A DNA stretch of 64,000 nucleotides from Selaginella moellendorffii (lineage: Eukaryota; Plantae; Lycopodiophyta). The notes below the pieces were generated by a model that saw only the letters and a list, made by a program, of their open reading frames with translations, was not told where the DNA came from and ran no database searches. The position numbers and the translations under genes were made by a program. This document shows, piece by piece, positions 58,138 through 58,364 of this stretch (its first letter is position 1; each line of letters begins with the position of its first letter). The stretch spans positions 4,019,229-4,083,228 of the forward strand of contig NW_003314264.1 of the NCBI RefSeq assembly GCF_000143415.4, read 5' to 3'.

Positions 58138-58182
58138 ATCCCACGAGCCGGAGCATAAAATCGTGCCACCATTTCTTTAAGA
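58138..58182 (+). promoter_or_regulatory. snRNA-type promoter: USE-like ATCCCACGAGC plus TATA-like TTTAAG
   Basis: Resembles plant USE RTCCCACATCG at about -67 and an AT-rich box at about -30 relative to the U4atac 5' end. Confidence 0.55.
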
Positions 58183-58204
58183 AGGGCGAGGCGGGCTCTT
58201 TCTA

Positions 58205-58364
58205 CTTGCCCGTCCCTGCCGAGGGTGAGGCGACAGGTTTATGACCGTATGGGATGACCTGTCGTGCTGACTTTTTTGTATGGACACATCGTATGTGGGA
58301 ATCACAGCAGTCTTTTACTTGAAAGGCTGCTTCTCACTAATTTTTGGAGCCTCGTAATGGGGCA
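58205..58364 (+). ncRNA. U4atac: U4atac minor spliceosomal snRNA
   Basis: 5' CCCGTCCCTGCCGAGG (U6atac stem II partner); 5' stem-loop CGACAGGT/ACCTGTCG with K-turn TGA-CC-GTAT-GG-GA; TGCTGAC (stem I); 3' hairpin 58306-58331; Sm site AATTTTTGG 58339-58347; terminal hairpin 58349-58363. Confidence 0.8.

Follow-up and report, generated by a model that had tools for sequence, protein, structure and literature searches.

A highly probable U4atac snRNA gene between COX17 and a PPR gene in the spikemoss Selaginella moellendorffii

Genomic setting of the locus

The locus lies in a stretch of 64 kb (64,000 nucleotides) of Selaginella moellendorffii DNA, which we call the window and whose positions are used throughout. 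It is found on GL377568.1 at 4,073,987-4,080,302, with an allelic copy on GL377652.1 (GCA_000143415.2). The two genes that flank the gap of interest, and the four tRNA genes of the window, are:

57853-58074, - strand: first coding exon of COX17 (ORF start 58074; Pfam COX17, E 8e-13)
58440-60473, - strand: convergent PPR gene, 677 aa (ORF; Pfam PPR, E 6e-85)
15009-15084, - strand: tRNA Ala-CGC (Rfam)
21627-21700, - strand: tRNA Glu-CTC (Rfam)
54182-54253, + strand: tRNA Pro-AGG (Rfam)
62535-62615, + strand: tRNA Leu-CAG (Rfam)

The first-pass annotation had proposed a hidden U4atac gene in the 365-bp gap between the COX17 start at 58074 and the PPR stop at 58440, and the gap is as it described: the ORFs match and Pfam identifies both neighbours. 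Its attribution of the DNA to a lycophyte holds as well, as the COX17 product and SELMODRAFT_29808 of Selaginella moellendorffii share a 90% cluster. The gene calls of both haplotype records place nothing between PPR and COX17, in tables that list protein-product genes only and are silent on RNA annotation. A 677-residue product is called at the PPR position in both records, yet the 677-aa product itself (58443-60473, -) is absent by exact look-up. The tRNA genes are nuclear and dispersed among protein genes. Sub-threshold matches to the box C/D snoRNA-like families snoU83B (23.1 bits, 20717-20798, -) and snoU61 (22.4 bits, 3436-3538, -), both with E above 2, are probably due to chance.

On the COX17 side, the Pfam search was made with the first exon rather than a joined model, and an intron appears to follow directly after ...EGFN; GenBank COX17 models vary by record between 60, 66 and 84 aa. 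Additional information comes from contigs of public runs (X1, X4, X8 and X10), which we guess to be RNA runs and whose contigs carry neither strand nor true ends. The COX17 transcript extends to at least 58113 (X8 contig 58044-58113), in agreement with the proposed head-to-head layout with the COX17 promoter, so that the start regions of COX17 and the candidate are about 95 bp apart. The COX17 leader or promoter carries a 21-bp insertion at 58104 in haplotype 2 and in X10, resembling an imperfect tandem copy of the adjacent GGTATATTCGTTGCC..., and the Ala/Gly-rich N-terminus of COX17 shows, in runs X4 and X8, an allele with an in-frame 6-nt deletion at 58038 and also C>G at 58032. Downstream of COX17 lies an LRR receptor-like kinase gene (55422-57014, -), which X4 contigs link to COX17 and to the snRNA locus, a hint of read-through transcripts or DNA. 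Synteny across Selaginella is unusable here, since COX17 homologues are too conserved for singling out close relatives and, for the PPR C-terminus, the next matches beyond S. moellendorffii are at 30-41% identity, none of them a near orthologue.

Elements of the candidate gene

All the elements listed in the first-pass annotation were found on the + strand when the sequence was checked, in the order and at the positions it had given. They are set out below together with the parts added by folding and alignment:

58138-58148, + strand: USE-like box ATCCCACGAGC, -70 to -60 from the proposed start
58176-58183, + strand: TATA-like box TTTAAGAA, -32 to -25, 27 bp past the USE
58208-58366, + strand: proposed U4atac snRNA body, about 159 nt (Rfam match, X8 contig, invariant block and fold)
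58209-58227, + strand: stem II segment CCCGTCCCTGCCGAGGGTG, opening with CCCGTCCCTGCCGAGG, presumed to pair with U6atac (likeness to Arabidopsis stem II)
58230-58265, + strand: 5' stem-loop with a K-turn-like loop, including the hairpin CGACAGGT...ACCTGTCG at 58231-58264 (fold and RF00618 alignment)
58265-58271, + strand: stem I segment UGCUGAC (TGCTGAC in DNA), aligned to GCUAAC of RF00618
58272-58294, + strand: U-rich linker (sequence)
58295-58337, + strand: 3' stem-loop of 6 bp + 11 bp, adjoining the Sm site (fold and RF00618 alignment)
58339-58347, + strand: Sm site AAUUUUUGG, given also as AATTTTTGG (RF00618 alignment and fold)
58349-58363, + strand: terminal hairpin GCCUC-GUAAU-GGGGC, 5 bp (fold)
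58381-58398, + strand: weak 3'-box-like motif CA-N9-AGTGCCA, one mismatch to CAN3-10AGTNNAA

The proposed body starts with a purine at 58208 (G in the window, A in haplotype 2), its 3' end is placed to within about 5 nt, and the PPR stop follows 74 nt past that end. Folded as a whole, the 159 nt give a z-score of -3.63 on the + strand, with 0/200 shuffles as good, versus -1.33 on the - strand. Individual elements are also more stable than their shuffled counterparts: the 5' stem-loop (-17.4 kcal/mol, z -4.09), the 3' stem-loop (-20.1 kcal/mol, z -4.93) and the terminal hairpin (z -2.77). The arrangement of hairpins and elements exceeds chance.

In the 5' stem-loop a stem of 10 bp is followed by an internal loop in which UAUGA faces GAU, by two base pairs of CC with GG and by a GUAU apical loop. 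Is this a K-turn? Such a motif has tandem G-A/A-G pairs, a bulge of 3 nt and a distal stem of 2 bp, and the canonical form has a 5+2 loop with a pentaloop. In the candidate the GA/GA, the UAU bulge and the CC/GG stem are present, and an extra U58255 on the 3' strand makes the internal loop 5+3, with an apical loop of 4 nt. The hairpin that the first-pass annotation called K-turn-type has its AUGA/GA and CC/GG elements in place, with a loop of 5+3 rather than 5+2. The Sm site AAUUUUUGG fits RAU4-6GR, is single-stranded between the hairpins at 58295-58337 and 58349-58363, and has the 3' stem-loop before it. UGCUGAC contains the GCU that would be expected opposite AGC of U6atac; a putative plant U6atac partner of stem I was named in the first-pass annotation as GTTGGCAT.

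Upstream, ATCCCACGAGC agrees with the plant USE consensus RTCCCACATCG at 7/11 positions. The USE core as such is not enriched in the 64-kb window (8 copies of RTCCCAC against 12.8 expected), and ATCCCACGAGC is the sole RTCCCAC copy there with a TATA-like box after it. Neither box varies in haplotype 2 or run X10, whereas the spacer from TATA to the start is free to vary. In Arabidopsis the USE-TATA spacing is 32-34 bp in Pol II genes and 23-24 bp in Pol III genes (PMC8287931; PMC9845283), and the 27 bp of the candidate fall between these values. A T6 run (58272-58277) and T5 runs inside the body argue against Pol III, and the same T6 run together with the Sm site argues for Pol II. We set aside 58381-58398 as a 3' box, given its mismatch and its loss in haplotype 2 (A58392 to C); downstream of the candidate body no convincing 3' box was found.

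Covariance models

In a permissive Rfam scan of 58000-58500 the U4atac model RF00618 matched 58209-58351 (+) with all of its 132 positions (1-132) at 30.6 bits, E being 0.0019 for the 501 nt and all 4227 families, and 0.24 over the 64-kb window. In the same 501 nt neither U4 (RF00015) nor any other snRNA family came up with an E-value of 10 or less, and across the whole window U4atac is the top non-tRNA Rfam match. The score is below the Rfam gathering cut-off of 53, which is an operational rather than a biological criterion, and also below the 40.03 bits that Lopez et al. used as their threshold without manual checks. At gathering scores the locus has no Rfam match and the whole window yields the four tRNAs only. 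The covariance-model check proposed in the first-pass annotation gave a full-length match to U4atac, with a score under the cut-off, and none to U4. Scaled to RF00618 alone and a genome of about 212 Mb, E is ~0.2, and for this reason the match by itself is suggestive, short of decisive.

A low score has precedents. According to Lopez et al., 2008 (PMC2396436), Rfam spliceosomal models are biased towards animals, and these authors took matches of 15-40 bits after motif checks. The same paper reports U6atac from S. moellendorffii, from which a minor spliceosome, and hence a U4atac, would be expected. The Rfam scan found no U6atac within the 64-kb window. In metagenome pattern scans no plant-like U4atac was found (stem II motif plus Sm site, with or without the K-turn ATGA).

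Comparison with known U4atac and U4

The Arabidopsis gene At4g16065, of 159 nt, was found by Wang and Brendel, 2004 with a stem II sequence derived from Arabidopsis U6atac (PMC545797). Our base-by-base comparison with it concerns stem II: 13/19 of the first 19 nt of the candidate are identical to Arabidopsis U4atac stem II (PMC545797), and 5/6 differences are transitions. A transition-tolerant stem II pattern has 1 match in the window, against 0.02 expected. The plant U6atac segment given in the first-pass annotation agrees with the Arabidopsis stem II (PMC545797), and against the U6atac segment thus implied the candidate pairs at 15/19 positions (13 Watson-Crick, 2 G-U; -22.1 kcal/mol), a level that 21 other 19-mers of the window reach as well. 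As the stem II substitutions imply, compensating changes are predicted in spikemoss U6atac. From the sequence, the partner is predicted to be close to CCCUCGGCAGGGACGGG, in comparison to CCUCUGACAGAGACGGG in Arabidopsis, with two A-to-G shifts and one C-to-U shift opposite C58215, C58219 and A58222; for stem I the predicted partner is of the GUYAGCAC type.

The likeness to At4g16065 extends beyond stem II. The two agree in their length of 159 nt (proposed for the spikemoss RNA), in a stem II start of CCCGUC, and in having a stretch for stem I, an Sm site close to the 3' end and promoter boxes of the USE and TATA type, and both are single-copy and tucked between two protein genes, the Arabidopsis gene being reported as single-copy (PMC545797). 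The spikemoss differs in the six stem II substitutions (five of them transitions) and in its weaker USE (7/11). With RF00618 and human RNU4ATAC the candidate has in common stem II, a 5' stem-loop with AUGA...GA and a GCUNAC stem I, then a linker, a 3' stem-loop and a CAAUUUUUGGA-type Sm site. It departs from them in the 5+3 internal loop, the 4-nt apical loop, a longer linker and an additional terminal hairpin past the Sm site; human U4atac terminates soon after this site. U4 (RF00015) resembles the candidate in architecture and in the presumed protein-binding logic (K-turn, Sm site), in contrast to the missing RF00015 match and the 5' segment of the U6atac-pairing type.

Conservation among haplotypes

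A comparison of haplotype 2 (GL377652.1) with the window reveals 12 events in the 365-bp spacer and 0 within 58209-58366 (P about 0.001). Run X10 represents a third haplotype, with about 7-8 further events, 0 of them in the body. Overall, 58209-58366 is identical in both assembly haplotypes and in the third one, against about 20 substitutions or indels in the flanks. The edges of this invariant block are sharp and coincide with the predicted RNA ends, not with the PPR stop or the COX17 start. On the 5' side five substitutions of X10 fall within 58192-58208, reaching the proposed +1, and the next X10 change comes only at 58412; on the 3' side changes in run X1 start at 58367 and continue onward. 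Between the block and the PPR stop, at 58367-58439, the spacer varies most, above all at 58425-58437 close to the stop, where haplotype 2 has a deletion of 13 bp and other runs carry assorted indels. As the S. moellendorffii body is identical in all haplotypes, there is zero covariation among them.

Transcript evidence

Run X8 is RNA-like: within 900 bp its depth varies between 0 and about 4000. It contains a separate contig of 164 nt at exactly 58208-58371 with a depth of 36 (strand and true ends not being given by a contig), and depth is zero just upstream of it, at 58120-58207. A thinner X8 contig (58342-58467, depth 9.7) bridges the candidate and PPR, and one X4 contig likewise ends at 58371. 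In X1, X4 and X10, contigs pass straight through the locus; these may represent the - strand PPR 3'UTR, PPR-to-COX17 read-through, or DNA. An antisense overlap of the candidate with PPR transcripts, which had been suggested for its 3' end, is plausible from these unstranded contigs. Taken together, conservation and contig data are consistent with a discrete RNA, about 159 nt long.

Weighing the alternatives

What is observed at the locus is a set of sequence elements, a model match, haplotype invariance and a separate contig in an RNA-like run, and we hold it to be highly probable that the COX17/PPR gap of Selaginella moellendorffii contains a U4atac snRNA gene, a component of the minor splicing machinery. 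The gene very probably occupies 58208 to about 58366 (+), once per haplotype. The same data could in principle be produced by a chance sub-threshold match in conserved regulatory DNA, that is, the COX17 promoter or the PPR 3'UTR, with the RNA signal coming from the - strand PPR 3'UTR or from PPR-to-COX17 read-through. Such an explanation would suit the score of 30.6 bits under 53 with E 0.24 at window scale, as well as the unstranded reads of X1, X4 and X10, whose contigs cross the locus and join PPR or COX17. However, conserved regulatory DNA would not be expected to have its invariant edges at the predicted RNA ends with the neighbouring 58367-58439 as the most variable part, nor a 164-nt X8 contig that is deeper than the PPR contig next to an uncovered 58120-58207. 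The significant fold on the + strand only and the coincidence of Sm site, K-turn-like loop, USE and TATA also argue against it, and we consider it very improbable.

The locus might instead encode an Sm-class snRNA that is U4-like but not U4atac, either a divergent U4 variant pairing with major U6 or a lineage-specific snRNA. U4 and U4atac have their architecture in common, and in a hand alignment with major U6 the candidate 5' segment and UGCUGAC could pair partly. Land-plant U4 is highly conserved, though, and should score high, while here, at E-values of up to 10, the locus is matched by RF00618 but not by RF00015, and its 5' end is similar to stem II of Arabidopsis U4atac, a sequence obtained from U6atac. 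We see hardly more than a slim chance for a U4-like RNA of this kind. It is extremely unlikely, in our opinion, that the copy is an inactive relic with the working U4atac elsewhere in the genome. Its K-turn and promoter spacing are atypical, and the Rfam scan was confined to the 64-kb window; against this, the body is identical in three haplotypes despite variable flanks, the promoter boxes are conserved, the RNA-like run X8 has a separate contig, and U4atac is a single gene in Arabidopsis (PMC545797).

Proposed mechanism

We infer the polymerase, cap, protein binding, U6atac pairing and splicing function of the candidate by analogy with known U4atac. A plant snRNA-type promoter (USE at -70, TATA-like box at -32), back to back with the COX17 promoter, would drive U4atac, and RNA polymerase II would produce an RNA of about 159 nt, as for human and Arabidopsis U4atac. 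An Sm ring would form on AAUUUUUGG, which has the 3' stem-loop on one side and the terminal hairpin on the other, and the K-turn of the 5' stem-loop would be bound by SNU13/15.5K and PRP31. U6atac would be paired by the 5' 17-19 nt (stem II) and by UGCUGAC (stem I). This pairing would keep U6atac inactive in the U4atac/U6atac.U5 tri-snRNP until activation of the minor spliceosome on U12-type introns.

Implications for plant minor-spliceosome RNAs

A joint and more far-reaching reading is that spikemoss U4atac breaks the rules drawn from angiosperms and animals in its K-turn, its USE-TATA spacing, its sharing of a region with COX17 and its antisense relation to PPR; we regard this as unlikely. 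If it were true, a 5+3 K-turn loop with a tetraloop would still recruit SNU13 and PRP31, the 27-bp distance would mean that lycophytes choose between Pol II and Pol III by another setting of the spacing code, U4atac and COX17 would have about 95 bp of control region in common, and PPR read-through transcripts would overlap U4atac in antisense and could modulate its expression.

Spikemoss U4atac is an expected gene of a known RNA class, which the supplement of Lopez et al., 2008 may already contain, and its value is in annotation and comparison rather than in a new concept. Among the RNAs of the minor spliceosome, U4atac has the lowest conservation and is overlooked most often, and the Rfam cut-off would reject the spikemoss copy. 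Placing it rounds off the set of these RNAs in an important early vascular plant and adds a lycophyte data point for the co-evolution of U4atac and U6atac, for variation of the K-turn and for the spacing rule of plant snRNA promoters.
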